IMG/VR virus record: IMGVR_UViG_3300023174_005338
Span: 124,001-188,000 of that record
Length of the DNA stretch: 64,000 nucleotides
Direction: 5' to 3' (one strand)
Positions 1-31,293 of this stretch are shown one piece after another; positions within the stretch are counted from its first letter, which is position 1, and every line of letters starts with the position of its first letter. Both the position numbers and the translations under genes were made by a program. The notes below the pieces were generated by a model. The model saw only the letters and a list, made by a program, of their open reading frames with translations, did not search any database and had not been told where the DNA came from.

Positions 1-75
1 CTGGATCAAGAAAGTTATCAAAGCGACCAACAGGCACAAAATGCACAACAAACACTCCAACAACCAGCTATTTGA
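1..75 (+). CDS. 3' end of an upstream gene (partial)
   Basis: Frame-1 open stretch LDQESYQSDQQAQNAQQTLQQPAI ending TGA 73-75. Confidence 0.35.
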   Translation: MDQESYQSDQQAQNAQQTLQQPAI

Positions 76-601: not shown

Positions 602-634
602 AGCTCTATTCTAAAAGTAGGTATATATGTACCT

Positions 635-4980: not shown

Positions 4981-5001
4981 TAACCATTGAAAGGAAGCAA
5001 A

Positions 5002-6282
5002 ATGTCGTTGAACAAAAAAGCACGAGCAACACACATCAGAAAAGAATGGGAAAGCAATCCACGCTGGGACCATATCAAGCGCAACTATACCGCAGAACAG
5101 GTGGTAGACTTGCAAGGAAGTAATCCTGTGGAATACAGCTTGGCCGAACGTGGTGCCAACAAGTTATGGATGAGCTTGTTGGAAGAAGATTATGTCAACA
5201 CCCTAGGCGCACTAACAGGCATGCAGGCCTTGCAACAGGTCAAGGCTGGGCTCAAAGGAATTTACCTAAGTGGCTGGCAAGTGGCCGCTGATGCCAACAC
5301 CAGCGGACAGATGTATCCGGACCAAAGTCTGTATGCAGTAAACTCGGTACCTGAAATGGTGCGCAAGATCAACAACACATTTGCACGAGCAGATCAGATA
5401 CAGTGGATGGAAGGTTCAGGAGATGTGGACTTTTTCCAACCCATAGTGGCCGATGCCGAATCAGGCTTTGGTGGTGTGCTCAATGCCTACGAACTCATGA
5501 AGGCCATGATCGAAGCCGGCGCCGCAGGTGTGCATTTTGAAGATCAGTTGGCGTCGGCCAAGAAGTGCGGTCACATGGGCGGCAAGGTCTTGATTCCCAC
5601 CCGCGAAGCTGTCAACAAACTCAATGCTGCACGCCTGGCTGCCGATGTGCTGGGTGTGCCCACAGTATTATTGGCACGCACAGATGCCGAAGCAGCCGCA
5701 TTGGTCACCAGTGACGTGGACGAAAACGACCGACCTTTCCTGACCGGTGAGCGCACAGTGGAGGGTTTCTATGAAACACGCAACGGCTTTGAGCAGGCAG
5801 TGAGTCGTGGCCTGGCCTATGCACCTTACGCAGATTTGATCTGGTGTGAGACAGGCACGCCAGATCTGGATTTTGCCAAGAAATTTGCCGATGCAATTCA
5901 TGACAAATTCCCTAACAAGATGTTGGCCTACAACTGCTCGCCATCTTTTAACTGGAAGAAAAATTTAGATGATACAACAATCAGCGTTTTCCAACGTGAA
6001 CTTGGAGCTATGGGTTACAAGTTTCAATTCATTACACTCGCTGGCTTTCATGCTCTTAATCACGGCATGTTTGATCTGGCTCATGGCTATGCTAGGAATG
6101 GCATGTCGGCATTTGTGGACCTACAGCAGAAAGAATTTGCCGATGGTGCGCGAGGCTTTGAAGCAGTCAAACACCAAAGAGAAGTAGGAACCAGCTATTT
6201 TGACCGTGTGACCACAACCATAGAAGCCACAGCGTCAACACAGGCACTCAAGGGCAGCACTGAAGAGGAACAGTTTCACTGA
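5002..6282 (+). CDS. aceA: Isocitrate lyase
   Basis: KKCGHM catalytic signature, [27 protein letters not shown]; SD AAGGAAG before ATG 5002. Confidence 0.95.
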
Positions 6283-6392
6283 TGCTTGATTTTATGTTCT
6301 ATGCGTTGGAAGTGTTGGGCTGGACTGTGGTGATGATAGCAGTGTCAGTGGCCGCGGCCGTGATATTCTGGCCTGACAAGGAACGACCATGA
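6282..6392 (+). CDS. Small single-pass membrane protein (36 aa; not in ORF track)
   Basis: [36 protein letters not shown]; TGATG and ATGA overlaps at both ends. Confidence 0.65.
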   Translation: MLDFMFYALEVLGWTVVMIAVSVAAAVIFWPDKERP

Positions 6393-6793
6393 AACGCATT
6401 GTTCTAGCCCTGACCTGTGTGTTGCTGAACAGTTGTGCCTTGTTGGATGCCTACTTGATGGCACCCTATGACGCCAACGAGTACCTGCAGATCACTGAGA
6501 TCCGAGTCATGGCCGGTCAGTATCGTCAGCAGTGTGACAATTTCCAGGCCAGTGCTGTCAACGCCCAAGACATCACACGCAGGACCATGATGTTCGAACG
6601 CTATTCAGAATATATTCCCCGAAACGAAAATGGATTCAAAGCGGCTCGAACACTCAATGAAATAGCACAAGGCTTGGGCACTGCCTACAGCAAGGGCATA
6701 GTCAGTGCCACATTCTGCAGATTGAAATACAACAACATAGAGCATGCAGCCGAACTCATACAGCGTGTCACAGCAGGCAGACCGCGTAAATAA
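6389..6793 (+). CDS. Lipoprotein, unknown function
   Basis: MKR + hydrophobic stretch + LNS|C lipobox. Confidence 0.7.
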   Translation: MKRIVLALTCVLLNSCALLDAYLMAPYDANEYLQITEIRVMAGQYRQQCDNFQASAVNAQDITRRTMMFERYSEYIPRNENGFKAARTLNEIAQGLGTAYSKGIVSATFCRLKYNNIEHAAELIQRVTAGRPRK

Positions 6794-9451: not shown

Positions 9452-9480
9452 TTGACCTTGCACCCAATGGCCAGTATAAT
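9452..9480 (+). promoter_or_regulatory. sigma70-like promoter
   Basis: TTGACC-17 nt-TATAAT upstream of dnaJ-like gene. Confidence 0.7.
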
Positions 9481-9503
9481 TACTATGCTGGCCATTTTCT
9501 TTT

Positions 9504-10277
9504 ATGCAGAATCCTTATCAAACTCTAGGCGTTGATCGCAGCGCATCACCGGATGAAATAAAACGGGCCTATCGCCGCTTGGCCAGCCAGCATCATCCTG
9601 ACAAAGGCGGAGACAAGGCTCGCTTCCAGGAAATACAAGCAGCCTACGAGTCTATAACCAATCCCCGGCCAAACAATTTCCAAAACACACAAAATCCGTT
9701 TGGCCAGACCAACAATAGTTCATTTGATTTTGATCATATATTCAACATATTTGGTGCCAGATTCCAACAACCGCATCAACGCATGCAACAACAGGCACGC
9801 ATGAGTCTCTGGATCACACTCAAAGATGCGGCACAAGGCGGCCCTCGTAGCATCACTGTTGGCACTGCCCAAGGCACCCAGGTAGTAGAGATAGAGATAC
9901 CTCGGGGCATCAACGATGGTGATTCGGTACAGTATCCAGGCATTGGCCCTGGTGGCATGGACCTGATCATCAGCTTTAGAATACATCCTGATGCGCAGTG
10001 GACACGACAAGGTCTAGATCTGGTCACCGAACACACCTTGAACATTTGGGACCTGATTTTGGGCACTGAGTTGCCGGTACGTGATGTACTTGGCAACCAA
10101 CTCAATGTAAACATTGCCGCAGGCACTCAACCCGGTACCATGATGAGATTACGGGGCCGTGGAATCACTGCCAGATCTGGTCAAGCAGGAGATCTTTTGA
10201 TCAAGATCCAGACCCGTATACCCACAAATATACCCGAAGATCTGGTCGTGCAGATCCGAGACCGATGCCGAAAATAA
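9504..10277 (+). CDS. DnaJ/CbpA-like co-chaperone (no zinc finger)
   Basis: J-domain with HPD (HHPDKGGD), G/F-rich linker, C-terminal peptide-binding domain (GTQPG, GDLLI). Confidence 0.9.
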   Translation: MQNPYQTLGVDRSASPDEIKRAYRRLASQHHPDKGGDKARFQEIQAAYESITNPRPNNFQNTQNPFGQTNNSSFDFDHIFNIFGARFQQPHQRMQQQARMSLWITLKDAAQGGPRSITVGTAQGTQVVEIEIPRGINDGDSVQYPGIGPGGMDLIISFRIHPDAQWTRQGLDLVTEHTLNIWDLILGTELPVRDVLGNQLNVNIAAGTQPGTMMRLRGRGITARSGQAGDLLIKIQTRIPTNIPEDLVVQIRDRCRK

Positions 10278-10348
10278 ATACTCTAACAACTTGCAAAAAG
10301 TACCAAAGTGTTGTAAACTAGTCGTAAGTACCAACAACAAAGGCCCGC

Positions 10349-12625
10349 ATGCAAAACAATCCTGAAATTGAACAAATTGTCGATCTGGCTGTAAAATTGG
10401 CTCGAGATCGGCATCATGAATATGTAATGACCGAGCATGTGTTGTTGAGCCTTATTCGTCATGAACCATTCCGTCGTGTGCTAGAAAAGTTTGGCACTGA
10501 TGTGGTGCGACTGGATTCAGAACTTGATGCTTATTTGTCTGGCTTGGTCGCAGTGGTTACCGACAAAGACATCCAACCCAAAAAGACCAATGCCTTGGAA
10601 CGCTGTTTCAATCGCGCACTCACGCAGGTGTTGTTTACCGGTCGCAGGACCATCAGCACCGTGGATCTTTATCTGGCCATGATGAGCGAAACCAATAGCC
10701 ATGCACATTATTTCTTGCTCAAGTACGGAGTCAAAAAAGCTGAATTTGTAGATTTTTATCAGACCAACTACAAACAAAGTGATGTACGACTCACTGATCA
10801 ACAGGCCACAGAAATACTCACAGAACACTGTACCAACCTCACACGTCTGGCCCAGGAAGATAGACTGGAGCCCATGATTGGTCGCACCGCCGAGCTGGCA
10901 GAAATGATCACAGTGTTGGCCCGCAAGTTCAAGGCCAATGTGCTCATGGTTGGAGATCCTGGCGTGGGCAAGACTGCCATAGTGGAGGGCCTGGCCCAGG
11001 AAGTAAGTGCAGGTCGTGTGCCTGAGTTTCTCAAGGGTCACGAAGTCTGGAGTCTGGAAGTTGGTAGCCTGTTGGCCGGATCAAAGTATCGCGGTGAGTT
11101 TGAAGAAAAATTCAAGGCCGTGATCACTGCCCTGGAAACCAAGAAAAACTGCATCTTGTTCATTGACGAAGCACACACCATCAAGGGCGCTGGATCCAGC
11201 AGCCAAAGCACCTTGGACATGGCCAACATGCTTAAACCGGCCATAACCAAGGGCAACCTCAAAGTGGTAGCTTCAACCACCTGGGAAGAATACTACGAAA
11301 GCTTTGAAAAAGATCGTGCGCTCATGCGCAGATTCCATAGGGTCAGCATTGATGAACCCACGAGAGAAACCACGGAACAGATCCTGATTGGCCTGAGCCC
11401 TCGATTGGAAGTGTTCCATAATGTGCTGATCGACACCGAAGCCATTACTGCCGCTGTGGAAATGAGTGGTCGTTACATACACGATCGCAAAAATCCCGAC
11501 AAAAGCATTGACTTGCTGGACGGTGCCTGTGCTCAAGAACGTGTGAAAGATCTAGGAAATGTAACTGTGAACAAACAAATGATCATGGCTCAGCTGAGTC
11601 GTGTCACAGATGTGCCCTTGGATCGCCTGGAAAATGAACGCAGCACCAAGATAGTGGAATTGGAAAGCAATATCAAACAAAAACTGTATGGACAAGATGC
11701 CGCAGTGGATCGAGTGCTGGAACGTGTTTACATCAATTTTTCCGGCATTGGCAATACCAAAAGGCCCATTGCCAGTTTCTTGTTCCTGGGACCCACTGGC
11801 ACCGGCAAGACCGAACTGGCCAAACTGCTGGCAGAAAATCTTGACATGACGTTGCTAAAATATGACATGAGTGAATATCAGGAACGCCACACTGTGTCAG
11901 GACTCATAGGTGCGCCTCCGGGCTATGTGGGCTTTGAAGATGGCAATCTCGGCGGCGGCAAGCTGATCTCGGACGTGAACAAGCACCCGTTCAGCATTTT
12001 GTTGTTTGATGAGATAGAAAAGGCACATCCAGATGTCATAAACATCATGTTGCAGATGCTGGACGAAGCCAGAATTACCAGCAGTGCAGGCAAGACCGTG
12101 GATCTCAAAAACTGCATCATTATCATGACTTCGAATCTGGGTGCCCGAGACAACGAAAACAACAACATTGGTTTTGGACAGAGTCTGGAACGCACCGGCG
12201 AAGAAGACCGTGCCATGAAAGATTTTTTCAAACCAGAACTGCGAAATCGCATAGACTCAGTGTGCAAGTTCAACAAACTGGATACCTTGGCCATAAAGAA
12301 AGTGGTGATCAAGTTTGTGGATGAACTCAAAGACAGCCTGCTCAACAGAAACATCAAACTCAATCTAGCCGAGCCAGTGATCAACCTGTTGGCTGAACGT
12401 GGCTACGACAGTCGCATGGGTGCTAGGCCCTTAGGTCGCAAAATAGACGAACTGATACGTGTGCCGCTGAGCCGCCGCATCTTGTTTGACAGACTTGAAA
12501 ATTGCACAGTGAACACCACAGTGGTTGATGATCAAATTGAGTTTTCTGTTGACACACCACCGGCCACACCCATGGTCGACCAAGATGGATACATAGTCCT
12601 TGACCAACCCAACTCGTCCATTTAA
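10349..12625 (+). CDS. clpA: ClpA-like Hsp100 ATPase
   Basis: Clp N-domain, two Walker A (GDPGVGKT, GPTGTGKT), GAPPGYVG, IGF loop, no ClpB middle domain. Confidence 0.85.
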   Translation: MQNNPEIEQIVDLAVKLARDRHHEYVMTEHVLLSLIRHEPFRRVLEKFGTDVVRLDSELDAYLSGLVAVVTDKDIQPKKTNALERCFNRALTQVLFTGRRTISTVDLYLAMMSETNSHAHYFLLKYGVKKAEFVDFYQTNYKQSDVRLTDQQATEILTEHCTNLTRLAQEDRLEPMIGRTAELAEMITVLARKFKANVLMVGDPGVGKTAIVEGLAQEVSAGRVPEFLKGHEVWSLEVGSLLAGSKYRGEFEEKFKAVITALETKKNCILFIDEAHTIKGAGSSSQSTLDMANMLKPAITKGNLKVVASTTWEEYYESFEKDRALMRRFHRVSIDEPTRETTEQILIGLSPRLEVFHNVLIDTEAITAAVEMSGRYIHDRKNPDKSIDLLDGACAQERVKDLGNVTVNKQMIMAQLSRVTDVPLDRLENERSTKIVELESNIKQKLYGQDAAVDRVLERVYINFSGIGNTKRPIASFLFLGPTGTGKTELAKLLAENLDMTLLKYDMSEYQERHTVSGLIGAPPGYVGFEDGNLGGGKLISDVNKHPFSILLFDEIEKAHPDVINIMLQMLDEARITSSAGKTVDLKNCIIIMTSNLGARDNENNNIGFGQSLERTGEEDRAMKDFFKPELRNRIDSVCKFNKLDTLAIKKVVIKFVDELKDSLLNRNIKLNLAEPVINLLAERGYDSRMGARPLGRKIDELIRVPLSRRILFDRLENCTVNTTVVDDQIEFSVDTPPATPMVDQDGYIVLDQPNSSI

Positions 12626-16096: not shown

Positions 16097-16114
16097 CCAG
16101 CGGTAAATACACTC

Positions 16115-19100
16115 ATGAACATCCATGAGTTAGATTCCTACGATTTAGGCGATGCTGTCAAGTTCAATGATCAGTTAAATCCACGCCTCTGGGGCGCAGA
16201 CGAAAAAATGCGTCCCGAAGTGCGTGAACAACTATTAAAAATCGCTGATGATTTCCGTGAATTCCTGGGCATAGATGTCGAAGTCAAGGACATCACTGTT
16301 TCAGGCAGTAACGCAGCCTATACCTATACTCCACATTCAGACATAGATCTACATCTGGTAGTTGACCTTCCCAAGGCTGATGCAAGTGAAGTTTATCGCG
16401 AGCTGTTTGATGCCAAAAAGTATGCATATAATGACATGCATGACATCCAGATTGGTGGTTATGATGTGGAACTGTATGTGCAAGATGCCAACAAACAGCA
16501 TCACAGTCAAGGCATCTACAGCATAATGAACAATGATTGGGTTGCAGTGCCTCGACGTCGCAGACCCGATGTGGACGACATCAGTGTAAAAAGCAAGTTT
16601 GAAGATCTCGGCCATCGTATTGAAGCGGCGATCAAAACTGGTGACTACGACAAGATTTCAACCATGGCCGAAAAGGTCCGAGAATATCGTCAAGCCGGCC
16701 TGGATGCTCACGGTGAGTTTGGTCCTGAAAATTTAGCATTCAAGATACTAAGAACTCAAGGACTAATCAAACAATTATACGACGCTCGTAACGCGGCCAA
16801 AGACGAACTGCTGAGCCTGGATGAGCGCCGAAAGAAAAAGAAACGCAAATCAGTACGATACGGCTACGGTGCTTACTGGTATCCGGGCACGGCCTATGCA
16901 GGCCAAGATCATCCTGCTGGTACCGAAGGTGGCGATGGCGGTGGTGACGGAGGCGGCGAAAGCATTAGAGAGTCTGTGGAAACCGCTGACGAAGACATAC
17001 TTCGAGATTTTGTGGATTTTTGTATCAAAGAATTAAAGATCAAACACATGCCACAAGTCAAACTACGCCGTGATCCACAATGGCCTGCGGTACACCGAAC
17101 CTTTGGTCGCTACAATGATGAAAACAAAACACTAGAAGTGGCCTGGGGACAACGTCACATCATGGATGTGCTAAGAACCGTGGCGCATGAACTCACACAC
17201 AAGCATCAACACGAGCGTGAAGGTGATCGCATGGGCCCCGACGCTGGCGAAACCGGCAGCCCTTATGAAAATGAAGCCAATGCTCGAGCTGGTGTGCTCA
17301 TGCGTGACTATGGTCGACTACACCCCGAATACTTTACCGTGGGCCAAGCACAGGGTCTGTCTGGGGATTCTATGCAAGAAACAGCACCCATAGGATTTGT
17401 CATGCCCGGCATGACCACAGATCCTGTCAAGGCCTGGAAACGACAAGTGCGTGATTTGATCCTGCAATACCGCGAGGATCCTACCAGACTGGCCGCGTTG
17501 GCCAAAGAAAAAGGTCCTGGCAGTGCCGAAGCGGTGGCCTATGCCTATATCAGAAACCCCACGGCACGTATTCCTTTGCCACCGGGTGTTGAGGTCAAGG
17601 AAAGCGCTAGTGGTTATATTCCAACAAAAAAGCAGGCCAAGGACCCAAGATTTTCAATGGCACTCACAGTGGATATCAAACCCGGACAAGTGGGCAAAGA
17701 AGCCAACAAGTTGAAATTAAAAACAGATCGCCAAGGACATCCACAGATAGCCCGTGCCAATGGCTTGTTTGAGGATTTGATGTTGGAATATCAACAGTTC
17801 AAAGAAAAAAAACTGTTTGCACTGGCCGCCGAAGACTACAGTCCAGACAATCCACCGGGCCCAGAGTTCAAGCCAACCATGCCAGCCGGCACGCTACGAG
17901 TAGATGTAAGCGATGTGTATGACTGGTACAAATTGGGACAACATATCGCCAATATGAAAGGCCTAGGCCAGCACGACTTTGGCAAAGGACCACCCAGCAC
18001 CATAATCAGCTTTGGTGATGAAGATGAAGAACACAAATTTATTGGGGATCTGGAAGCTACAGGCCTGGATGTCACAGACATTGACCCTCGTGATCCTGTA
18101 AAACGTCCAGGCAAAACAATCAAGACCGATCCCACTTACAATGTAAATGAATTTGCTCCCACGCCAGATCGTGATGACAACGATTACGTTCCAGATCAGT
18201 TGTTGATTTTGGCCAATCGCTGGTGGAATGCCACAGACAAGCAACCACAGATTGAGCATGTGCTAAACAGCCTAGGCTGGAGTATAGCACAGGTAGAGTC
18301 CGAAGATGATGCTGTGCAACTACAGCACCGTGATGGCACTACATATTTTATCAGTGCCGATGAATTTGATCCTGACCTATATGAAGTCAGTGATCAACGC
18401 CTGCAACAATACTTGAGCCGCGCTGGCCAACAAGTGGATCGCCGGCAAGAACGCATGGCCCAGGCTCGCGAACGCTTGAACAAGGGTTATGAAATCTATG
18501 ACGCCGAAGATCCCACTCGCATAGTGCATAGATTTGAAGCTGACACTCCTCAAGAAGCTCGACGCTACTACGAACAGTACAATGACAACTATGATAGTGA
18601 CGTGGACTACAATCTAAGACTGCGCCGCGCCACAGGTTTGATGGAAAGTGAAGAAGAGCTAGACGAAGTAAAAATGAGTCCTGGAGCCTTGGAAAAGTTT
18701 GCTACGTCTAATGCCGCAAAAGGTATACGTGCTGGCTTTGAAGCCGAACTCATATTCCGCGACACACAGGGCAGCAGCGATGACTTAGATCCTGAACCCG
18801 ACTACGATGCTGATGAGCGTGCCTACAGCATACAGCAGGTCATAGATTTTTTCAGCAACGATGATTATGGTTATGGACTCAGCGATCGTGAGCAAATGCG
18901 ACTCACTGACAACCTAGACGAAACTTATATGACATGGCGCGACGAGCAGATGATCAGCGACTTCCGCAACGACGCCGAAGACTTGATCCGTGAAAAACTG
19001 CTTGATGAAACTCCCCTGAGCGAACGCATACACTTGTATCTCACTGACAGTGAACAAATGTCAGACAAAGAGGCCGACCGGATCATAGCCGCCGGCGTAG

Positions 19101-21670
19101 ACGCACCTAAATTTGACACCAGCAAAGACCAAGCGGCCTATGCGGCACAAAATCCCTACTATCAAGCATACCTGGACGCTGTTGATGCAGTCGAGCTAGA
19201 ACTGGATGAATCAGTGGAATACAGTGTGAGCCGTGAAGACGAATACTGGGACGAAGCCTTGGATGATTACCGCGACAACTATTCCGGCGATGATGACAGT
19301 TTCTTTAGTGATGTGGGCCTGCGCTGGATGAGCGACATTGCCAACGAGTTTGGCCTGGATTGGCCTGTTTGGAACATGGACAGCGACCGCAACAACGGTT
19401 CACGCAGTTGGGAAGACATTGGTAGCGAACTACAGGCAGTGGTAGACATGCCAGTTGTGGTCAGCGATAACTATCATTCAACCCGTCGTAGACCCGGTCA
19501 GTGGATCATAGAACCCGACGGCAGTTTACATCCCGACGATCAAAGCGAAGAAGCTGGCTTGGAAATAGTCAGCCCACCCATGCCCTTGCTCACAGCCATT
19601 GAAAAATTAAAACAAGTCACGGACTGGGCCAATGATCCCAACGGTGGCAACGCTTATACCAATGGTACCACTGGCTTGCACATGGGCGTGAGCCTGCCTC
19701 GGTTTACCTCCGAAGATGCTGATTCAGATGCTGGCATAGACTATGTGAAACTGATCCTGTTCATGGGCGACAAGTATGTGCAACAACAGTTTGGTCGCGA
19801 AGCCAACAACTTCTGTGCCAGTGCCTTGGGCAAACTGCAACAAAACATCAAGGGCAAGAAATCAGATCCCGCAGGTGTGATCGAACTTCTGCGTCATGGA
19901 CTCACAGAACTAGCCTATAAAGAACTGCAAAAAGGTGTGGGCACCAGCAAGTATACTTCAGCACACATACAGGATGGCTACATTGAATTTCGTAGTCCGG
20001 GTGGTGACTGGTTGGCCAAGAGTGACGAAGAGATAGGCATACTAGAAAACACTATGTTGCGTTTTGCTAGAGCCATGGCCATAGCCGGCGACCCCAGTGC
20101 TGATCGCAAAGAATATGCCAAGAAGCTGTACAAGTTGGTCACCCAAGACAATGAACAGTATGCGGACCAACTACGCTTGTTCTCGGAGTTTTCGGCCGGC
20201 ACCATCAACAAAGAACAGCTCAAAAAACAGTGGGCTGATAGTGTGCTACGCAAAGAAATACCCACCACTGGCCAAGAAGAATACGAAGTCTACGATGCAA
20301 ACAAGAGTCGTAGTCCCGAGGGTGTGATCGACACATTCTATGCTCGGGACTACAATGATGCCTATGAGCAGTACACTAAAAAATACGTCAACGACCCTCG
20401 CTGGACACAGACTGATATACGCCTAAAACAACCATGGTTTGATGTGCAAGATGCTACGGGCAAAAACATACTGACCATGCGTGCTCCTGACATTGACAAA
20501 GCCACGCAACGGGTCCAATACGAATATGGCGAGAAGTCCCAGGACTGGAAAGTATATCGCAGACCCGATGAGTCACCTGAGCCAGAAAAGAAACTGAGTC
20601 CACGTGCTCAAGTGGCCAAGCGTATCACAACCAAACCAAAAACTGCGACCCAATTCAACTATGACATAGTGGATCAACGCACTGTAGAGTTGCGGGTAGT
20701 TGACAGGTTCCGTGCCGAAACACCAGCAGAAGCAGAAAAGATTTACAGTCAATGGTTGCAGAGCAAAGACCTGCCCGATGACACTGCCAACTATGGCTAT
20801 CGTAAAAATGCGCAGGCCGCAGACAATCAAAGAGATTCAGCAGATATACAACGCAGACTGGGTGTGCAGGATGTGGACACGGATGTGGCACAGAATTTTG
20901 GTCAGTCACAAGATGCCACACAAAGATCGGGTTCCTGGAGCATATATGATGTTACCCTGGGGCGCGAAATCACTAGGATGGACAATGTTCCATGGCAACA
21001 GGCCAACGATCGTGCCAACGAACTGGAACAAAGCACTGGACATAACATGTCAGTAAGAGGGCTATCTGAATCCATTGATCCCGTCAGCGGTGCTGGTGCT
21101 GTGAGTCCGAGACAAGATCCAAAAAACACGGGCAAGAAAGCTGTTACTCCAGCAGAAAAGGTCTTTAAGAATCCGGTCAAGGGCCAGCCTTACCGCAATG
21201 CCATTGGACAAGCCATCACCCAAAAAGACTTGGAAAACATGACACAACAGATACAAGTGGCCAGGAAGTTAGGCGACAGTGTGATGGAGATGGAAGATAC
21301 TCCGCCCGAAGTGTTGCGAGCATTGGACCAGGCTGCACAAAAAAATGGCTACAAGAACTGGGCAGATGTCAAGGCCAATCCTCGCAGTAGCAGTGCTGTA
21401 ATGACCGTGGCCAAGCTGGCTAACACTATCATGAAGACCACAGGTCCACATCATGAAAAATTGTTTTACAAGAATAAGACAGATGTAGATGAAAACTTTG
21501 CTGACGGAAAAAACCCTGGACGTAAAGGATTGAGCCGCAGGGTAGGTATTCCTAAAAAAGCCACACTGGGACAACTAGAAAAAATAGCCAAAAGTTCTAC
21601 AGGCGAGCGTCGCAAAATGGCACAGTGGCAGTTGAACATGCGTCGTGGAAAGGCAAAGAAAAACAAATGA
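16115..21670 (+). CDS. Giant polyvalent protein (1851 aa): Pol-beta-type nucleotidyltransferase, HExxH metallopeptidase, amidoligase-like domain, repeats
   Basis: GSNA...SDIDL...DVELY; HELTH...ENEANARA; GFEAE...EPDGSL...LEIVSPP...GLHMG...IEFR; TAAATA 16104-16109. Confidence 0.75.
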   Translation: MNIHELDSYDLGDAVKFNDQLNPRLWGADEKMRPEVREQLLKIADDFREFLGIDVEVKDITVSGSNAAYTYTPHSDIDLHLVVDLPKADASEVYRELFDAKKYAYNDMHDIQIGGYDVELYVQDANKQHHSQGIYSIMNNDWVAVPRRRRPDVDDISVKSKFEDLGHRIEAAIKTGDYDKISTMAEKVREYRQAGLDAHGEFGPENLAFKILRTQGLIKQLYDARNAAKDELLSLDERRKKKKRKSVRYGYGAYWYPGTAYAGQDHPAGTEGGDGGGDGGGESIRESVETADEDILRDFVDFCIKELKIKHMPQVKLRRDPQWPAVHRTFGRYNDENKTLEVAWGQRHIMDVLRTVAHELTHKHQHEREGDRMGPDAGETGSPYENEANARAGVLMRDYGRLHPEYFTVGQAQGLSGDSMQETAPIGFVMPGMTTDPVKAWKRQVRDLILQYREDPTRLAALAKEKGPGSAEAVAYAYIRNPTARIPLPPGVEVKESASGYIPTKKQAKDPRFSMALTVDIKPGQVGKEANKLKLKTDRQGHPQIARANGLFEDLMLEYQQFKEKKLFALAAEDYSPDNPPGPEFKPTMPAGTLRVDVSDVYDWYKLGQHIANMKGLGQHDFGKGPPSTIISFGDEDEEHKFIGDLEATGLDVTDIDPRDPVKRPGKTIKTDPTYNVNEFAPTPDRDDNDYVPDQLLILANRWWNATDKQPQIEHVLNSLGWSIAQVESEDDAVQLQHRDGTTYFISADEFDPDLYEVSDQRLQQYLSRAGQQVDRRQERMAQARERLNKGYEIYDAEDPTRIVHRFEADTPQEARRYYEQYNDNYDSDVDYNLRLRRATGLMESEEELDEVKMSPGALEKFATSNAAKGIRAGFEAELIFRDTQGSSDDLDPEPDYDADERAYSIQQVIDFFSNDDYGYGLSDREQMRLTDNLDETYMTWRDEQMISDFRNDAEDLIREKLLDETPLSERIHLYLTDSEQMSDKEADRIIAAGVDAPKFDTSKDQAAYAAQNPYYQAYLDAVDAVELELDESVEYSVSREDEYWDEALDDYRDNYSGDDDSFFSDVGLRWMSDIANEFGLDWPVWNMDSDRNNGSRSWEDIGSELQAVVDMPVVVSDNYHSTRRRPGQWIIEPDGSLHPDDQSEEAGLEIVSPPMPLLTAIEKLKQVTDWANDPNGGNAYTNGTTGLHMGVSLPRFTSEDADSDAGIDYVKLILFMGDKYVQQQFGREANNFCASALGKLQQNIKGKKSDPAGVIELLRHGLTELAYKELQKGVGTSKYTSAHIQDGYIEFRSPGGDWLAKSDEEIGILENTMLRFARAMAIAGDPSADRKEYAKKLYKLVTQDNEQYADQLRLFSEFSAGTINKEQLKKQWADSVLRKEIPTTGQEEYEVYDANKSRSPEGVIDTFYARDYNDAYEQYTKKYVNDPRWTQTDIRLKQPWFDVQDATGKNILTMRAPDIDKATQRVQYEYGEKSQDWKVYRRPDESPEPEKKLSPRAQVAKRITTKPKTATQFNYDIVDQRTVELRVVDRFRAETPAEAEKIYSQWLQSKDLPDDTANYGYRKNAQAADNQRDSADIQRRLGVQDVDTDVAQNFGQSQDATQRSGSWSIYDVTLGREITRMDNVPWQQANDRANELEQSTGHNMSVRGLSESIDPVSGAGAVSPRQDPKNTGKKAVTPAEKVFKNPVKGQPYRNAIGQAITQKDLENMTQQIQVARKLGDSVMEMEDTPPEVLRALDQAAQKNGYKNWADVKANPRSSSAVMTVAKLANTIMKTTGPHHEKLFYKNKTDVDENFADGKNPGRKGLSRRVGIPKKATLGQLEKIAKSSTGERRKMAQWQLNMRRGKAKKNK

Positions 21671-22211: not shown

Positions 22212-23396
22212 ATGAGAGCACAAGAGCTGGGATCCGGCAAGCTGGTCATATTTGACATTGATGACACCTTGGTCAACACCGACACTAGAGTCAATGTGGT
22301 GCAGGATGGCCGAGTCATCAAGCAGTTGAACAGCCACGATTTCACACACTACAAACTGGCACCCGGTGAAACATTTGACTTTGGAGCATTCAAGGATGCC
22401 AGAGAGTTCTTTACCAAGGCCCGACCTATTCCTGGCATGATCAAACAGCTAAAGCATGACATAGCCACAGGTAACAGAGTGATCATGCTCACAGCACGCA
22501 GTGACTTCAATGACCGTGATGTGTTCTTGGACACATTCCGCAGATTTGGCATAGACATGGACCGGGTCCACGTATATCGTGCTGGCAATCTTGCCATCAA
22601 AGCGGCCACCGAAGAAAAGAAAAAAATCATACTCAAGCATTTACTGGGCAAAGAGCACTTTGACAAGCTGATCATGTACGATGATTCAGTGCCCAACCTT
22701 AATGCTTTCTTGAGCTTGAAGCAGGATTATCCCTACAGCAAATTTTATGCCTGGCATGTGGACCCCAATGGACAAGCTAGTGAATATCATAGAACCGATG
22801 AAGGACAAGTCATGGAGATCGCACGTATACCTGTGGGAGATTTTGGGGACAAAGACAATCTCATACCCATGAGTGAACCACGCAGTTCACGACCTTTGCC
22901 CGGAGGATCAGGCCTGAGCTATCATGTCAAAAACATGCATAACAAAAAACAAATCACCATGTTTGACCAAGGGCAGTTGGTGGCCGAAATGGATCTCATA
23001 GACAGCATTTATCCGGCCAACACCTGGGAAGTCGAAGGCATAGTGGTAGATCCTGACTACCGAGGTCGTGCCTTGGGCTTGGCCTTGTACGGCATAGCAC
23101 TCAGTGAGCTCCGACTTACCTTGAAAGCGGGCCGCACACAGACCCGCCACGGCAGGGCCATGTGGCTCAAGCTGAATCAGATACCTGGAGTTGAAATACG
23201 TGGAGTAACTCGAGCACGACGCAACCAGTACAAGCCTAGACCCAGCAATGAAATCCTAGCACAAAATCAACAATATGTGTGGTACACTTTTGCTGTGGAA
23301 CCAGGTGCTCAAAGCATGCGCAGCGGTCAGCGCGGAGTGGCCTTGTACAGCTACGACACACCCAGTACCATGATAGCACAGTGGAGAGGCCAATGA
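22212..23396 (+). CDS. HAD-family phosphatase fused to GNAT-like domain, CTS-like N-terminus
   Basis: MRAQEL; IFDIDDTL, MLTARS, MYDDSVPNL; second domain VDPDYRGRALGLALY, QTRHGRAMW. Confidence 0.75.
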   Translation: MRAQELGSGKLVIFDIDDTLVNTDTRVNVVQDGRVIKQLNSHDFTHYKLAPGETFDFGAFKDAREFFTKARPIPGMIKQLKHDIATGNRVIMLTARSDFNDRDVFLDTFRRFGIDMDRVHVYRAGNLAIKAATEEKKKIILKHLLGKEHFDKLIMYDDSVPNLNAFLSLKQDYPYSKFYAWHVDPNGQASEYHRTDEGQVMEIARIPVGDFGDKDNLIPMSEPRSSRPLPGGSGLSYHVKNMHNKKQITMFDQGQLVAEMDLIDSIYPANTWEVEGIVVDPDYRGRALGLALYGIALSELRLTLKAGRTQTRHGRAMWLKLNQIPGVEIRGVTRARRNQYKPRPSNEILAQNQQYVWYTFAVEPGAQSMRSGQRGVALYSYDTPSTMIAQWRGQ

Positions 23397-23581
23397 AAGC
23401 CCGAGAAATATATCCCAAATACAAGTTGTGGACTGCCCCTGTGCGCATACAGCAACCCAACTACGTAGGCTACATTGATGTTACGGTCACAGCCGACAAT
23501 CAGCAGGATGCCCGCAGGCTCATGCGAGCCCAGTATGGGGTGGCCGACTGGCACATAGGTAGCGTAAAGGAAGTGCGATGA
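23393..23581 (+). CDS. Small protein (62 aa), CTS-like N-terminus
   Basis: MKAREI; ATGA overlaps. Confidence 0.65.
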   Translation: MKAREIYPKYKLWTAPVRIQQPNYVGYIDVTVTADNQQDARRLMRAQYGVADWHIGSVKEVR

Positions 23582-24315
23582 GCATCACAGTCACAGGCGG
23601 CACAGCCGTCATAAACGGTGACTACACTGTTCGCACCTTTGAATCATCGGGTACACTCACAGTCTCAGGAGGCACACTGGCCAATGTTCAATACTTGCTT
23701 GTAGCTGGTGGCGGTCAAGCTGCTTTCCCTACCAGCACCTATGTGGCCGGTGGTGGTGCAGGCGGAGCCATGACCGGTAATATCAATTTAAATTCAGGCA
23801 GTTATCCTGTGGTCATTGGTGCCATTGGAAACAACAGCACGTTCTTGAACATGACAGCCATTGGCGGCGGTCAGGGCGGATTTTACGGCAACGGCAGCAG
23901 TGGTGGATCTGGCGGTGGAGGTGGAACCCTGGGTACCACACATATAAATTTTGCAAGTTTTGTTGGCGGAAACGGCACACCCGGACAGGGTTACAACGGT
24001 GGAGCACCCTATGGCGGTGGATATCCACCATTTGGACCAGGTGGGGGCGGTGGCGCAGGCGGTCAAGGCGGCAAAGGCTCACCCGATGGAGTAGGTGGTG
24101 TAGGTGGGCTTGGTCTAGCCAGCAACATAACTGGCAATGTTGTCTATTATGCTGCAGGCGGCAGTGGAATAGGCCCCCAAGGAATTGGCAACAACAATCC
24201 TGGCTACAAGAACTATGGTGCTGGAGGTGGCTATGATATAGCCGATGGTCCCACCTACTATGATCGATTGCCCGCACAGCCCGGTGTGCTCATAATCAGA
24301 TACCCTACACCCTAG
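23578..24315 (+). CDS. Glycine-rich phage protein
   Basis: LLVAGGG...GGGAGG, GGSGGGGG, GVLIIRY pattern. Confidence 0.75.
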   Translation: MSITVTGGTAVINGDYTVRTFESSGTLTVSGGTLANVQYLLVAGGGQAAFPTSTYVAGGGAGGAMTGNINLNSGSYPVVIGAIGNNSTFLNMTAIGGGQGGFYGNGSSGGSGGGGGTLGTTHINFASFVGGNGTPGQGYNGGAPYGGGYPPFGPGGGGGAGGQGGKGSPDGVGGVGGLGLASNITGNVVYYAAGGSGIGPQGIGNNNPGYKNYGAGGGYDIADGPTYYDRLPAQPGVLIIRYPTP

Positions 24316-24627: not shown

Positions 24628-24812
24628 GAGCTAGTGAATTTATAGTAGAAACAACTGTAAGCGGCAGTATTGCTTCAGTGGCCATGCCCCTGGGCGGCAT
24701 GATCACAAGAAATGCTGGATCTTTCTTTTCTGGTAAATACTCTAATAGTGCGGATCCGTATCCTAATACACCTGCCTACATGAAAAAAGGAAAAAAGCCT
24801 CGTGCTCGCTGA
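24624..24812 (+). CDS. Small basic protein with CTS-like N-terminus (62 aa)
   Basis: MRASEFIVE then GSIASVAMPLG and a K/R-rich end. Confidence 0.65.
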   Translation: MRASEFIVETTVSGSIASVAMPLGGMITRNAGSFFSGKYSNSADPYPNTPAYMKKGKKPRAR

Positions 24813-25242
24813 TTTGTTAAAAGTTTATCTAGCTTCAACATTTGCTTATTATTTGAAAGCACACTATTTCCACTGGAACGTGGAAGGCCCAGATTTTGGC
24901 CAACTGCACAAGTTTTTCCAAAAAATCTACGAAGATGCGTTTGGAGCTGTAGATCCCATTGCCGAATACATAAGAACCACAGAAGAATATGCACCCGGAA
25001 GTTTTGAACGCTTCCAAGAACTCACACAGATACAGGGACAGACCAAGGTTCCCCGTGCCCGATTAATGTTAGAAGAATTGCTCGCAGACACACAGACCAT
25101 GAAGGACATGAGCAAGCAGTTGTTTGATGCTGCCACAGCCGAAGGTCGTGAAGATGTAGCCAATTTTGCTGCCGAGCGCCAAAGCGCACACGGCAAGTAC
25201 ATGTGGCAGATCCGGAGTTATCTGAAAGACGCAAGGGCATGA
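24802..25242 (+). CDS. dps: Dps/ferritin-like DNA-protection protein
   Basis: HYFHWNVEGPDF..LHKFF..IYE...D.IAEYIR; HGKYMW. Confidence 0.85.
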   Translation: MLADLLKVYLASTFAYYLKAHYFHWNVEGPDFGQLHKFFQKIYEDAFGAVDPIAEYIRTTEEYAPGSFERFQELTQIQGQTKVPRARLMLEELLADTQTMKDMSKQLFDAATAEGREDVANFAAERQSAHGKYMWQIRSYLKDARA

Positions 25243-29000: not shown

Positions 29001-29162
29001 GGCAGCAGTGATGTGAGTGGTTGGGTCAATCAAGTCAAACAGATCCTGGGCGTGCCTGAAGATCTAGATGAGAAGTGGAGTGCCAAATACAAAAAGAGCA
29101 TTAATTGTAGTAACCCAAAAGGATTCTCACAAAAAGCTCATTGTGCGGGAAGGAAAAAATGA
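26037..29162 (+). CDS. Large modular protein (1041 aa) with coiled coil and C-terminal basic two-Cys module
   Basis: About 14 hydrophobic-x-E junctions; ends LDE-KWSAKYKKSINC...HCAGRKK. Confidence 0.7.
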   Translation: MLSLDLFNSRYEKKLHEGAVDDAEYARLKKLGEKIDYLKQARAKTTDAEMQRAIDGRIKEYNDERMEILSVRGMKEAEQPTQRPSKQDPFAYVKPDPQGIGDTQDPKQKMAQLTQRAKKGHLANVGAGIKAFIKGEPEPMDEEQQTVNPRALGVANFQRLVKANMGNIPTVNLEFIRPEENFKLDQKGLDLISDYYDGLESDQAKNYFIYRVLPSGDETKKILKQLGWTTQQVQPSLPGIPTQGELPLQEKKKSNNDDLEAGDVKVARELQKLRARYPAVRSDIEAVASAEIDSTERSQQQLAAIRGANDKQDALLKQLVDLDKQQGREIDGLDKENNSLEQRLAQVQATNDRLQQTIGQMTGTKKAATKTKTTAPQGSADVAQGGIIDVGAPMASMPNATTVAPASNTTSTTSNKAMKYTSQQIQGLGQVAPDIRGKAANDGDQQTKKVSGSDIEEHGGGIGPRQHWQDLMQEGQPQELIHRYLAINAETDVDAVRKAIQAISRDPALGANSKARLLGQIGMIIKRHRLPIGRSYYQFMQQYMEEQSVTETVENVRAGMARIYRRLAPKIERHRDSFLAGQLYDELENYAELHGAEGEFKRMMATARNSAHMEYDTNPGGFQNWFWFLPFEDNDVDEAISKKDLLAKLQKNLPKVNDPKNKHAKPVNWTGAGKDDYGYTGYQGHGMPTDKQERARIRADKKKGVAEGTDDIKKKMSKLEALALAANRAGDDAKCKMYQQKIQSLKQKLSQSMAEGWSDQGNPTPYSVYIDGREWRAYKSDDHARAVAEKVRANLKRQGRDQTVTIAPSKTKKVQEDFGMPGTTIPRKSLIQGYTVFWNPTTQVVSVTRGGDSEEAAIEQARVGTPSMKNFRQAADRLIDRIESDLTENLTREPRTARERDEMIDKIRRMMTQDRNPANLQIMKKDIEILQTRYRDLKEDSDSGKAVEMAIMRRMLVAHTDLIVEFGLDKVVDAIEEVAYNVGDTDEIGSSDVSGWVNQVKQILGVPEDLDEKWSAKYKKSINCSNPKGFSQKAHCAGRKK

Positions 29163-30229
29163 GATATCAAGAAATTCTTGAAGCCTGCTGGACAGGATAT
29201 CGGCAAGCCGGCATGAAGAAAAAGGGCGACCGTCAAGTGCCCAACTGTGTGCCCGTGGAAGAGGTCAAGATAGGTCCAGAGATCACTGGCAAGGACCTGT
29301 TGTTCAAGGCAGCTGCCATGGCCATGCGTGATGCGTCACACGAAGGCATCAGCTTGGACTATGAACAGGCCATCAAGCAAGCCAGCAAAATTTATGGCAT
29401 ACCTTACCAACCCAGTGAACTGCCCAAGTTACTGGCCCAGCGCCAAGAAATAGATCGTCAGTTGGCCCTGTTGAAACAAGGCAAACAAGTGGCCAAGGCT
29501 CGCAGACAAGAAAAACGAGCACCCACACCAGCCGGTGCCGACGAATACTGGAAGACACATGCTCTTCCTACCGATCGTATCAAGCCTGCAACCAAATCTC
29601 TTGAAGAAACAGAAGCAGAACTGGCCGAAGATTTGAAAAAGTGGTTCAAAGAAAAGTGGGTGCGTTTTGGCCCCGATGGTAAAATCCGTGGTGACTGTGC
29701 CCGAGGCAGCAGCAAAGAAGGCAAACCAAAATGCCTGCCACAAAGCAAGGCACATGCTCTAGGCAAGAAAGGCCGTGCGTCGGCCGCGGCCAAGAAGCGC
29801 AGAGAAGATCCCAATCCCGAACGCAGAGGCCCAGCAAAAAATGTGGCCACCAAAGTCAAAGAAAATCGCGGCGGCAACTATGAAGAACTTGGTCTTAGAA
29901 AATCATCGGCAGATAGGTTCGCTGTGTTAGACAGAACGCTGGATGCCGTTATAATGACCACTAACGATTTAAAAGCAGCCAAACAAGAAGCTATTGAGTG
30001 GGCTGACTATGACGATATCAGGACAGAAATCATTGATCAAGTCACAGGTAAAAAAATATTTGCTGTGGATGGCAATGCAGGTGCAATGAACTATCTTGAT
30101 GAAAAACAAGACGCCTGCTACCGCAAGGTAAAAAGTCGTTACAAGGTCTGGCCGTCAGCTTATGCAAGTGGAGCTTTGGTCCAGTGTCGTAAGAAAGGTG
30201 CCGCCAATTGGGGCAACAAGAAAAAATGA
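29159..30229 (+). CDS. Modular protein of basic two-Cys micro-domains, CTS-like N-terminus
   Basis: MRYQEILE-ACW..., LAE-DLKKWFKEKW..., LDE-KQDACY... Confidence 0.7.
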   Translation: MRYQEILEACWTGYRQAGMKKKGDRQVPNCVPVEEVKIGPEITGKDLLFKAAAMAMRDASHEGISLDYEQAIKQASKIYGIPYQPSELPKLLAQRQEIDRQLALLKQGKQVAKARRQEKRAPTPAGADEYWKTHALPTDRIKPATKSLEETEAELAEDLKKWFKEKWVRFGPDGKIRGDCARGSSKEGKPKCLPQSKAHALGKKGRASAAAKKRREDPNPERRGPAKNVATKVKENRGGNYEELGLRKSSADRFAVLDRTLDAVIMTTNDLKAAKQEAIEWADYDDIRTEIIDQVTGKKIFAVDGNAGAMNYLDEKQDACYRKVKSRYKVWPSAYASGALVQCRKKGAANWGNKKK

Positions 30230-30654: not shown

Positions 30655-31293
30655 ATGCGTATCAGTGATTTCCGTATAGAAAACCATGACAAGCTGGATC
30701 GCATATTAGTAGATCTGTGTGAAATGGTCATTGCGGGTCAACAACAAGATCCAGATCTCTATGGCATGGTAGCGGCAGCTGTGTTGGATCCTGACAACCG
30801 TCTAGTCATGGCACTAAATCATGCCCAAGGCCGCAAGGATGTGCATGGCGAGCGTGCAGCCATAGACAAGTATAGAAAGCAGTATGGTGAAATTCCTGAA
30901 GGCAGTATCATCGTCACTACCTGTAGTCCCTGCACTGAACCCATGCCCGAACGTATGGGCGCAAGTTGTAGAGATCTAATCAGTTCAACTCCGGTCCACA
31001 AGGTCTATGCTGGTTATAGAGATCCCAGCCAGGACACAGGCCCAGGCGATAAAACCTATCACTTACAAATAACACGCAACAAACGGATACAAGAATTGTG
31101 TCGACAATTTGCCAACACCTGGCTCAAAGATGAATTAAATGAACTCAGCTTCCTAGGCAGTCCATGCACCCGAGACTGCTCAGGACATAGAGCTGGTTAC
31201 TACTGGAGCCAGGCAAGAGGCGGAGCCAAGGTGCCCAACTCATGGAGCCAGAGTTTCAACAATGGTGCGGCATTGCACAAGGCAGGCAAATGA
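30655..31293 (+). CDS. Zinc-dependent (cytidine/dCMP-type) deaminase plus C-terminal Cys/His module
   Basis: HGE...TTCSPC (HxE / PCxxC variant); LNE-LSFLGSPCTRDCSGH. Confidence 0.7.
   Translation: MRISDFRIENHDKLDRILVDLCEMVIAGQQQDPDLYGMVAAAVLDPDNRLVMALNHAQGRKDVHGERAAIDKYRKQYGEIPEGSIIVTTCSPCTEPMPERMGASCRDLISSTPVHKVYAGYRDPSQDTGPGDKTYHLQITRNKRIQELCRQFANTWLKDELNELSFLGSPCTRDCSGHRAGYYWSQARGGAKVPNSWSQSFNNGAALHKAGK

Follow-up and report, generated by a model that had tools for sequence, protein, structure and literature searches.

A predicted fusion of a nucleotidyltransferase, a minimal zincin and a split amidoligase in a polyvalent-type protein of uncultured freshwater jumbo phages

The closest described systems are the polyvalent proteins, very large chains in which unrelated enzymes are combined with a zincin-like metallopeptidase acting as hub domain, and which are delivered with the DNA (Iyer et al. 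2017, PMC5512222). In that survey, Pol-beta nucleotidyltransferases (NTases) were found in the conjugative-element type only, and the term amidoligase has 0 occurrences in the text. The classical amidoligases of phages measure ~300–450 aa and are paired with a glutamine amidotransferase (PMC10580990).

We report here on a phage gene in which an NTase, a minimal zincin and a glutamine synthetase (GS)-like ligase interrupted by an insert are joined, a combination which is absent from the 2017 polyvalent catalogue (PMC5512222). The gene occupies positions 16115..21670 (+) of the window, that is, of the whole 64-kb stretch of DNA that was analysed. It is a single ORF with an ATG start and no internal stop, coding for 1851 aa plus the stop codon, and it lies within a dense block of + strand genes, the next ATG (21667) overlapping its stop codon. 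The phage genome carrying it measures 337 kb and has terminal repeats; the identical 1851-aa protein was found on 5 contigs from separate assemblies.

Organisation of the protein

Features of the protein are collected in Table 1. An earlier note on this DNA had read the chain as an NTase followed by a Gly-rich linker, an HExxH peptidase, an amidoligase, repeats and a basic tail. This is the order that we find, with all motif coordinates matching, and the identification of the three enzymes as nucleotidyltransferase, zinc peptidase and amidoligase-like domain proved correct by Pfam, predicted folds and invariant motifs. The label of polyvalent protein, also given in the earlier note, is equally apt as far as architecture is concerned: unrelated enzymes are placed around a metallopeptidase in one very large phage chain, variable regions separate the conserved cores, and the domain architecture varies among relatives. 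Proteins of the 2017 class travel with the DNA; such delivery would be hypothetical for the present one, whose annotated neighbours serve chaperone, metabolic and replication functions and not the virion. At the level of the whole 1851-aa protein, no solved structure was matched by sequence and no NCBIfam match was obtained; regions 480–900 and 1400–1851 gave nothing usable from Pfam.

Table 1. Coordinates of the features along the 1851-residue chain and of its main motifs (nucleotide positions refer to the window).
Feature	Nucleotides	Residues	Strand	Remarks
Pol-beta-superfamily nucleotidyltransferase module	16115..16819	1-235	+	NTase core and conserved helical C-terminal half; GS at residue 64, DxD at 76-78
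Conserved linker	16820..16969	236-285	+	Lys/Arg run, aromatic YGxxYWYPG motif, Gly/Asp-rich stretch to GGGES; predicted disordered
Minimal zincin metallopeptidase	16970..17344	286-410	+	Predicted fold, invariant motifs; HELTH at residue 358 (nt 17186)
Variable insert	17345..17602	411-496	+	Missing or replaced in many relatives; three confident helices predicted at ~437-480
Strongly conserved segment, low predicted order	17603..17794	497-560	+	SGYIPT...DPRF...ALTVDI...GHPQ
Conserved domain without assigned function	17807..18199	565-695	+	EDYSPDNPPGPEF...
Variable region	18200..18649	696-845	+	Includes repeat copy 1 (residues 792-830, nt 18488-18604)
Amidoligase module start	18650..18766	846-884	+	Leader helix, then GFEAELIF as first catalytic strand (GFEAE at residue 874, nt 18734); invariant E876, E878
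Acidic helical insert inside amidoligase	18767..19369	885-1085	+	
Glutamine-synthetase-like amidoligase core	19370..20119	1086-1335	+	Pfam, fold, invariants; YIEFR at residue 1289 (nt 19979)
Conserved post-ligase region	20120..20914	1336-1600	+	Helices to ~1345, then repeats
Repeat copy	20282-20398	1390-1428		
Repeat copy	20657-20779	1515-1555		
Variable basic C-terminal region	20915..21667	1601-1851	+	pI 10.1

The three enzyme modules and the regions between them

The NTase module, when residues 1–240 were scanned alone, matched NTP_transf_2 (PF01909) with 23.9 bits for a cut-off of 21; in the whole-protein scan the score was 19.7 bits, slightly below this cut-off. The same family was matched in 42 relatives out of 42, and across them G64-S65, D76, D78 and E119 are invariant. 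An hG[GS] motif, a DxD standing 10 residues after the GS, within the usual spacing of 9–13, and a third carboxylate are all present, as in NTases. The search of solved structures with the NTase profile gave no match. PHROG 36119 matched the module with an E value of 1e-40. Solo viral NTP_transf_2 proteins of this PHROG, such as Synechococcus phage S-CRM01 g125 and that of Maribacter phage Molly, share 34–37% identity over the full 235-aa module, helical C-terminal half included. The PHROG 36119 proteins, of the same Pfam family, are free-standing and ~240 aa long (232–247 aa for the viral solo homologues), whereas here the NTase forms the N-terminus of a giant chain.

For the peptidase, the predicted model comprises, at pLDDT >90 and in model numbering, a helix (50–72), three strands (79–83, 96–99 and 104–108) and two further helices (114–137 and 148–167), namely the zincin topology of an N-terminal helix, a three-stranded sheet and two C-terminal helices. 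H358, E359 and H362 are carried by helix 114–137, E385 and E387 of an ENEAN motif by helix 148–167; in 106 relatives the first four of these residues never vary, and at least 90% of them have E387. In an exhaustive structure search against 48,161 chains, the top 50 were all of zincin fold. Re-alignment of the Foldseek matches likewise placed zincins alone at the top. Z values were 9.0 for Wss1 (rmsd 3.1, 101 aa aligned), 8.2 for SPRTN, 7.7/7.6 for PprI/IrrE, 7.6 for selecase and 5.4 for ArdC; Z values of 8–10 are middling by the search tool's own notes, and this assignment, like that of the ligase below, rests on the uniformity of the matches together with the motifs. YbeY RNases score equally (Z 8.9), but their metal motif differs. 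The topology of a helix, three strands, the HExxH helix and the Glu helix is common to the minimal zincins, i.e. Wss1/SPRTN, the M78 peptidases IrrE/PprI/ImmA, the minigluzincins selecase and abylysin, and ArdC, and as these families differ by no more than ~1.5 in Z, no subfamily is singled out.

In sequence-based searches, no Pfam peptidase family was reached by the domain, and its profile found no match among solved structures. The score for M78 (PF06114) was 13–14 bits for a cut-off of 22, the best relative reaching E 5.5e-4, and sub-threshold M78 matches were obtained in 57 of 68 relatives, none of them attaining the cut-off. As it remains below the cut-off, we file the peptidase as M78-like, not as M78; in our reading, the ENEAN following HExxH resembles the E..AN signature of that family.

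The ligase module was recognised by Amidoligase_2 (PF12224) with 28.1, 31.6 and 31.9 bits in separate scans (cut-off 22), and viral amidoligases match it with E values from 3.6e-39 to 2e-10. The best 50 solved structures found for its model were all glutamine synthetases or GmaS (Z 10.4–8.9), with ~195 aa aligned to the GS catalytic domain over model residues 10–486, insert spanned; the Foldseek probability to GS was up to 0.94, with weak E values. In 108 relatives, eight residues show no variation, namely E876, E878, E1133, D1135, E1150, H1189, E1291 and R1293, those of the core lying in the motifs EPDGS (1133–1137), GLEIVSPP (1148–1155), GLHMGVS (H1189) and YIEFRSPGGD (E1291, R1293). Judging from the order of these motifs and from what is known of GS, we take them to correspond to its metal- and ATP-binding residues (GxExE strand, Glu/Asp, His, ExR).

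In its Pfam family, GS-like fold and catalytic motifs, the module is the same as phage Amidoligase_2 proteins of the phiEco32, Marvin and OM43-phage type. Its layout differs from that of the classical phage amidoligases, as ~200 residues with 28% Asp+Glu and a pI of 4.05 separate the first catalytic strand from the core, an arrangement otherwise seen only in metagenomic phages and in the solo proteins (~500 aa) from RsoM2USA and Atu_ph07. All relatives have kept this insert, and Ralstonia phage RsoM2USA gp26 has a shorter version of it. The prediction is that of a confident helical domain rather than of a disordered spacer, with pLDDT above 90 over most of the length and lower at both ends. 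Downstream of the core, the post-ligase helices are common to solo phage amidoligases up to ~1345.

The remaining regions are less readily classified. The linker contains 26% Gly, and in solo relatives this element stands after the peptidase. The SGYIPT segment travels with the peptidase among relatives, and domain 565–695, present in about two thirds of them, was found with 50% identity in a distant relative, where it is placed before the SGYIPT segment; no Pfam, PDB or Atlas match was obtained for this domain. A repeat of ~40 aa has three clear copies (from residues 792, 1390 and 1515) and a further two, less clear, near 1441 and 1608. The C-terminal 67 residues contain 30% Lys+Arg and have a pI of 10.9, and the last ~60 (ENFADGKNPGRKG...) also terminate small solo peptidase proteins. 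Outside the ORF, no further copies of the Gly-rich linker, the basic tail or the small repeat were found in the same genome. A tblastn search of phages with residues 236–860 matched the peptidase only, and with 1335–1851 gave no match.

With about half of the chain lacking a recognisable enzymatic function, one might ask whether the protein is a structural or scaffold component in which the enzyme-like domains are inactive relics. This is hardly credible: the catalytic residues examined are invariant or nearly so in 42–108 relatives, down to ~45–55% domain identity, in proteins whose inter-domain regions are freely replaced.

Relatives and genomic surroundings

A total of 1405 relatives was found, mostly on freshwater contigs of 300–370 kb. 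Among 119 relatives listed, all three cores are kept in 115–118. Variation is concentrated in regions 411–496, 576–845 and 1600–1851, where sigma-70 region 4, GNAT or deaminase domains are occasionally present. A nucleotide search of 50,697 phage records gave no match to the gene, and the search of phage records did not reveal the fused gene in any cultured phage.

Each of the three enzymes also occurs solo in other large phages: the NTase in cyanophages and Maribacter phages, the peptidase in metagenomic phages as well as Synechococcus phages S-SRM01, B3 and B23, the split amidoligase in RsoM2USA and Atu_ph07. Elsewhere among viral protein clusters, the peptidase fold is fused to an NTase, a cytidylyltransferase, a 5'-nucleotidase or a superoxide dismutase. 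Such varied partners would fit a processing or hub role, by analogy with the one proposed for polyvalent proteins (PMC5512222).

A syntenic relative is informative as to the link between the enzymes. There, the NTase is a separate gene of 240 aa, with 14 nt between it and the peptidase-ligase gene (1155 aa) that follows, and the module order is permuted. This means that the enzymes are functionally linked and that their covalent joining is not required. A partnership of NTase and ligase has a precedent in GlnE, the adenylyltransferase that regulates glutamine synthetase, which is a Pol-beta-superfamily NTase. The NTase module could likewise adenylylate the amidoligase module and switch it on and off. 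The N-terminal domain belongs to the superfamily of GlnE, its partner has a GS-like fold, and the two remain fused or adjacent across relatives. The NTase is nevertheless of the small NTP_transf_2 type, not of the GlnE type, and it occurs solo in many phages showing no match to the ligase region, which makes such self-regulation highly improbable.

Named neighbours of the gene are a DnaJ, a ClpB-like ATPase, a cytidylyltransferase-like protein, an HAD+GNAT protein, a ferritin, a dCMP deaminase and a DNA polymerase; many neighbouring ORFs have no annotation. The earlier note had presented the protein as an injected chain. In such a scheme it would be loaded into the capsid, enter with the DNA and disable the defences of the host during the first minutes of infection, and the architecture does fit the class described in PMC5512222 (very large size, unrelated enzymes, zincin hub, variable cargo). 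The tail of pI 10.9 could bind DNA or serve packaging, and unannotated neighbours leave room for virion genes. The surroundings do not bear this out, as the named neighbours are of chaperone, metabolic or replication function and no structural gene was recognised within the 64-kb window. The protein itself contains no detected portal, MuF or capsid-targeting domain, its NTase is a separate gene in one relative, and Pol-beta NTases belonged to the conjugative-element type alone in the 2017 survey. Solo homologues also argue against packaging, as they adjoin primase/helicase, RNR or PrkA-SpoVR genes; of three whose surroundings were checked, two lie among replication or metabolic genes and the third, that of Atu_ph07, has a portal gene nearby, encoded on the other strand. 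Altogether, we regard injection as unlikely. A conserved partnership of the split amidoligase with PrkA-DUF444-SpoVR, as seen in RsoM2USA, was also considered and rejected, SpoVR being absent from the genome and the context in Atu_ph07 being different.

The nucleotide-metabolism neighbours (cytidylyltransferase-like protein, dCMP deaminase and HAD phosphatase) would agree with a biosynthetic complex, in which NTase and amidoligase act sequentially, their substrate being either a small molecule or the bases of phage DNA, and the peptidase trims a precursor. Nucleotide activation followed by an amide-linked decoration, giving a hypermodified base or a nucleotide-amino acid conjugate, would be examples. 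Amidoligase genes do occur together with those for thymidine hypermodification on viral contigs (PMC8989533), and a pathway common to NTase and ligase is suggested by their conserved fusion or adjacency. We consider this reading quite improbable, since the surroundings yielded no recognisable 5-hmdU kinase, hydroxymethylase or glutamine amidotransferase, the contexts of solo amidoligases are not conserved, and a simple pathway enzyme would be expected to contain neither a zincin nor ~900 residues in non-enzymatic modules. For the glutamine amidotransferase the absence extends to the whole 337-kb genome, in which no PF13522 or PF13230 match was found, controls being positive. This result also bears on the modifier-ligase-protease set that the earlier note had envisaged: the amidotransferase partner is missing and no modifier protein was found.

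A possible role in takeover of the host

On balance, we favour the view that the protein is a catalytically intact multi-enzyme fusion of polyvalent type, belonging to uncultured freshwater jumbo phages and serving as a zincin-processed modifier in host takeover or counter-defence. It would be made inside the infected cell, from the gene block that also contains DnaJ and the ClpB-like ATPase. The zincin might then cut the chain, in cis or in trans, at the conserved and poorly ordered junctions, and free the modules. The NTase would place an NMP on a hydroxyl of a protein, a small molecule or an RNA end; the ligase would activate a carboxylate via ATP as an acyl-phosphate and couple an amine to it, in the manner of glutamine synthetase. 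Jointly, the enzymes could modify host or phage components covalently and so contribute to takeover or counter-defence. That the fusion protein takes part in RNA repair, which had also been suggested, is pure conjecture.

Self-cleavage is the step which we infer by analogy for the zincin domain. The dipeptide ES, found at 282, 496 and 844, was examined as a recurrent cleavage motif of the junctions and rejected, its conservation being 112/120, 67/120 and 4/120, respectively. In the peptidase model, the conserved SGYIPT segment was not docked into the active site. RNA runs were searched for the sequence, and none contains it.

A variant of this scheme is a protein-tagging device, in which the zincin would release a peptide from its own chain, and the ligase would couple this peptide to host proteins through an amide bond, with the NTase activating or marking the target. 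PafA, the enzyme of pupylation, is a GS-like carboxylate-amine ligase, and tagging of this kind would be the phage counterpart of pupylation. The SGYIPT...DPRF segment and the basic C-terminal tail are candidates for the released peptide. We hold such a device to be very unlikely.

The 1405 relatives form a family without a cultured member. As its three enzymes are joined in one chain or, in some relatives, encoded side by side, a common process is very likely, and a single target, once found, would provide annotation for thousands of phage genes. The family would also offer a tractable test of the self-processing by zincins that has been proposed for giant phage proteins. Attachment of a peptide or an amino acid to proteins of the host by the ligase, if it takes place, would be a protein modification of a new kind, driven by phages.

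The reading frame, its genome and its relatives

The open reading frame at 16115-21670 (+ strand) runs for 1851 codons without interruption, and five contigs from different assemblies encode the identical 1851-aa protein, which rules out an assembly artefact. The motifs named in the earlier note were all in place: HELTH at nt 17186, GFEAE at nt 18734 and YIEFR at nt 19979. As the virus record in which the window occupies bases 124001-188000 measures 337,119 bp and has direct terminal repeats, it corresponds to a jumbo phage. At least 13 freshwater and lake metagenome studies contain the sequence, and a search for RNA runs with it found none. Ahead of the giant gene's start codon (window 16097-16114) there is no purine run of Shine-Dalgarno type, and none ahead of its split counterpart in L012, a locus of a related viral genome (9724-9737). 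This may indicate a host with weak Shine-Dalgarno usage.

A full-length word search gave 1405 relatives. Among the 120 listed, most are 1300-2660 aa long, many come from contigs that measure 300-370 kb, and additional domains (sigma-70 region 4, GNAT or deaminase) are present in a few. Mapping 119 listed relatives onto the giant protein delimited conserved cores (residues 1-420, 497-570 and 850-1600) and replaceable regions (420-497, 576-850 and 1600-1851). The surroundings of all presumed active sites are near-invariant in the 120-sequence alignment.

Nucleotidyltransferase, peptidase and amidoligase domains

When the whole protein was scanned against Pfam, NTP_transf_2 scored 19.7 bits, slightly below its cut-off of 21; the isolated domain (residues 1-235) scored 23.9 bits, above it, and the family was matched by all 42 relatives tested. 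PHROG 36119 matched residues 15-233 (E 1e-40). The domain follows the Pol-beta pattern (hG[GS], DxD 10 residues on, third carboxylate), and its invariant residues are G64-S65, D76, D78 and E119. The entire module, helical C-terminal half included, is also encoded on its own, as 232-247-aa proteins with 34-37% identity, by T4-like cyanophages, by Maribacter phages and by very large phages that are uncultured; 1277 short relatives were found by word search.

The NTase is followed by a linker that is predicted to be disordered (Gly 26%, pI 9.4), then by the peptidase, for which sequence evidence taken alone was weak. Peptidase_M78 reached 13-14 bits, below the cut-off of 22; sub-threshold M78 matches were nevertheless obtained in 57 of 68 relatives, and others matched Tox-MPTase3, DUF6782 and SprT-like. 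An AlphaFold2 model built with 106 relatives as input gave a pLDDT above 90 for the domain and reproduces the zincin topology exactly: an N-terminal helix and three strands, then the HExxH helix and a further helix with the invariant ENEAN. Foldseek E-values were weak (0.016 or higher), with M78-like regulators, minigluzincins, IrrE, Wss1, SPRTN, CapP and lethal factor as leading matches. Re-alignment gave Z scores of 9.0 for Wss1 (rmsd 3.1 over 101 aa), 8.2 for SPRTN, 7.7 for PprI, and 7.6 for IrrE and selecase. In an exhaustive alignment against 48,161 representative chains, the top 50 were all of zincin fold, among them the peptidase domain of ArdC, the archetype of polyvalent-protein metallopeptidases. 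Given this model and these zincin-only top matches, we accept residues 286-410 as a predicted zincin metallopeptidase, and file it in neither M78 nor any other named family.

Solo peptidases of 122-252 aa were found in Synechococcus phages S-SRM01, B3 and B23 and on other large phage contigs, and viral clusters of the ESM Atlas fuse the fold to NTase, cytidylyltransferase, 5'-nucleotidase or superoxide dismutase. Three solo proteins of ~250 aa (P0129, P0131 and P0132) consist, in this order, of a zincin, a Lys/Arg-aromatic-Gly linker and a basic ENFADGKNPGRKG... tail. All three elements are the same as those at the two ends of the non-NTase part of the giant protein, and the proteins have the appearance of a compact unit of peptidase and tail, meaning that linker and tail travel with the peptidase.

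The third enzyme, at residues 846-1335, scored above the Amidoligase_2 cut-off at residues 1100-1234 (profile positions 17-160). That its first catalytic strand (GFEAE, residue 874) lies ~200 residues upstream of this core, as the earlier note proposed, was borne out by the model and its structural matches, strand 28-37 of the model sitting in the catalytic sheet, by the invariant E876 and E878, and by gp26 of Ralstonia phage RsoM2USA, a solo protein of 523 aa with the same layout of GFEAE leader, insert and core (32% identity). Invariant residues are E876, E878, E1133, D1135, E1150, H1189, E1291 and R1293. The 50 best solved matches of the model were all glutamine synthetases or GmaS (Z 10.4-8.9, ~195 aa aligned), the alignment to glutamine synthetase spanning model residues 10 to 486; strong BFVD matches were viral 'amidoligase enzyme' entries and an Atu_ph07 protein. 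The insert is very acidic (Asp+Glu 28%, pI 4.05), is kept in all relatives mapped, and is confidently predicted to be a helical domain rather than a mere spacer. Whereas classical phage amidoligases come with a partner glutamine amidotransferase (PMC10580990), neither such a partner nor a second amidoligase was found in the whole genome.

In RsoM2USA (locus L005, 15247-25936), the solo split amidoligase gene gp26 lies directly downstream of DUF444 (YeaH-like) and SpoVR-like genes. PrkA, DUF444 and SpoVR form a stress-module trio in bacteria; SpoVR was not found in the genome of the window.

Other modules, split genes and neighbours

Residues 497-560 are almost invariant, yet of low order in the model. 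Residues 565-695 form a conserved domain without match in Pfam, solved structures or the ESM Atlas. A ~40-aa unit occurs three times (residues 792, 1390 and 1515) and, in weaker form, at 1441 and 1608; the last 67 residues are basic (pI 10.9).

The gene is split in relatives that have the upstream gene order in common (DnaJ, ClpB-like ATPase, several small genes, two ~300-aa genes). L012, a more distant relative, has a separate 240-aa NTase gene that stops at the domain boundary, 14 nt upstream of a 1155-aa gene; compared with the window, the SGYIPT...DPRF segment and the EDYSPDNPPGPEF domain have exchanged places there, indicating module permutation within the family. In L013, another viral locus, two genes of 302 and 1491 aa overlap within the Gly-rich region, which could be a frameshift.

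Location of the domains and genes discussed
Feature	Location	Strand	Remarks
Linker	residues 236-285		Lys/Arg run, conserved aromatic YGxxYWYPG motif, Gly/Asp-rich stretch with GGGES end
Peptidase	residues 286-410		zincin fold predicted; HExxH and ENEAN
Isocitrate-lyase/PEP-mutase family gene	window 4987-6282		
DnaJ-like gene, then ClpB/ClpA-like double-AAA ATPase	window 9504-12625	+	DnaJ + DnaJ_C; ATPase of 758 aa
HAD+GNAT protein	window 22212-23396	+	394 aa; two genes downstream of giant ORF
Glycine-rich protein	window 23578-24315	+	245 aa; PHROG 2295; weak Pfam Gly_rich_2
Ferritin-like gene	window 24802-25242		
P0155, basic protein	window 29141-30229	+	362 aa
dCMP deaminase gene	window 30655-31293		
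T4-type family-B DNA polymerase	window 37994-40651		PHROG 262, E 6e-195
Aminotransferase gene	window 58466-59797		
Solo peptidase + linker + tail (P0129, P0131, P0132)	L008 (viral locus) 6001-6756		
1155-aa gene	L012 9738-13205		linker, peptidase, 565-695-type domain, SGYIPT segment, amidoligase

Within 10 kb of the giant ORF lie the ICL/PEP-mutase, DnaJ, ClpB-like ATPase, HAD+GNAT, ferritin and dCMP deaminase genes and one for a cytidylyltransferase-like protein; the DNA polymerase and aminotransferase are farther away. The chaperone pair is syntenic in the window, L012 and L013; the ATPase matches PHROG 4871 (E 8.5e-234). Among cultured phages, the closest homologues (39% identity) belong to Pseudomonas jumbo phages from the PA5oct group. 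The best sigma-70-like promoter match of the region (11/12, window 9452-9496, +) lies directly upstream of the DnaJ gene and overlaps a terminator-like hairpin with a 13-bp stem; it may start a co-directional block containing the giant ORF.

The HAD+GNAT protein, which has a counterpart in L013, is HAD-phosphatase/polynucleotide-kinase-like at its N-terminus (PHROG 415; several HAD Pfam families, all sub-threshold) and GNAT-like at its C-terminus (20.6 bits, slightly below cut-off). The glycine-rich protein aligns to the middle of the 1183-position PHROG 2295 profile, and several more Gly-rich stretches precede the start of the window by ~9-10 kb (genome coordinates 113.9-115.1 kb). DUF5872 was matched below its threshold by the last ~35 residues of P0155 (23.7 bits, cut-off 27.5); by eye only, part of this protein's interior is similar to the small strand-strand-helix repeat of the giant protein.

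A polyvalent architecture

Polyvalent proteins are defined as large proteins of phages and conjugative elements that have many domains and are delivered along with the DNA; zincin metallopeptidases are their hub domain and proposed agents of self-processing, and Pol-beta NTases were found only in the conjugative-element type (PMC5512222). Amidoligases are nowhere in the text of that paper, and the 2021 jumbo-phage survey has them in its reference list alone. Full-text searching found no description of the present architecture. The polyvalent reading put forward in the earlier note holds for the domains and the architectural class. Its further proposals, a 'modifier' and RNA repair, found no support, nor did injection, as no structural gene was recognised around the ORF, where many ORFs match nothing.

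The modules being adjacent in some genomes and fused in others argues that NTase, peptidase and ligase work in one process, for which covalent linkage is not essential. The best explanation would be a catalytically intact three-enzyme polyprotein made inside the infected cell; its own zincin domain probably cleaves it, and its NTase and ligase would covalently modify host or phage targets.
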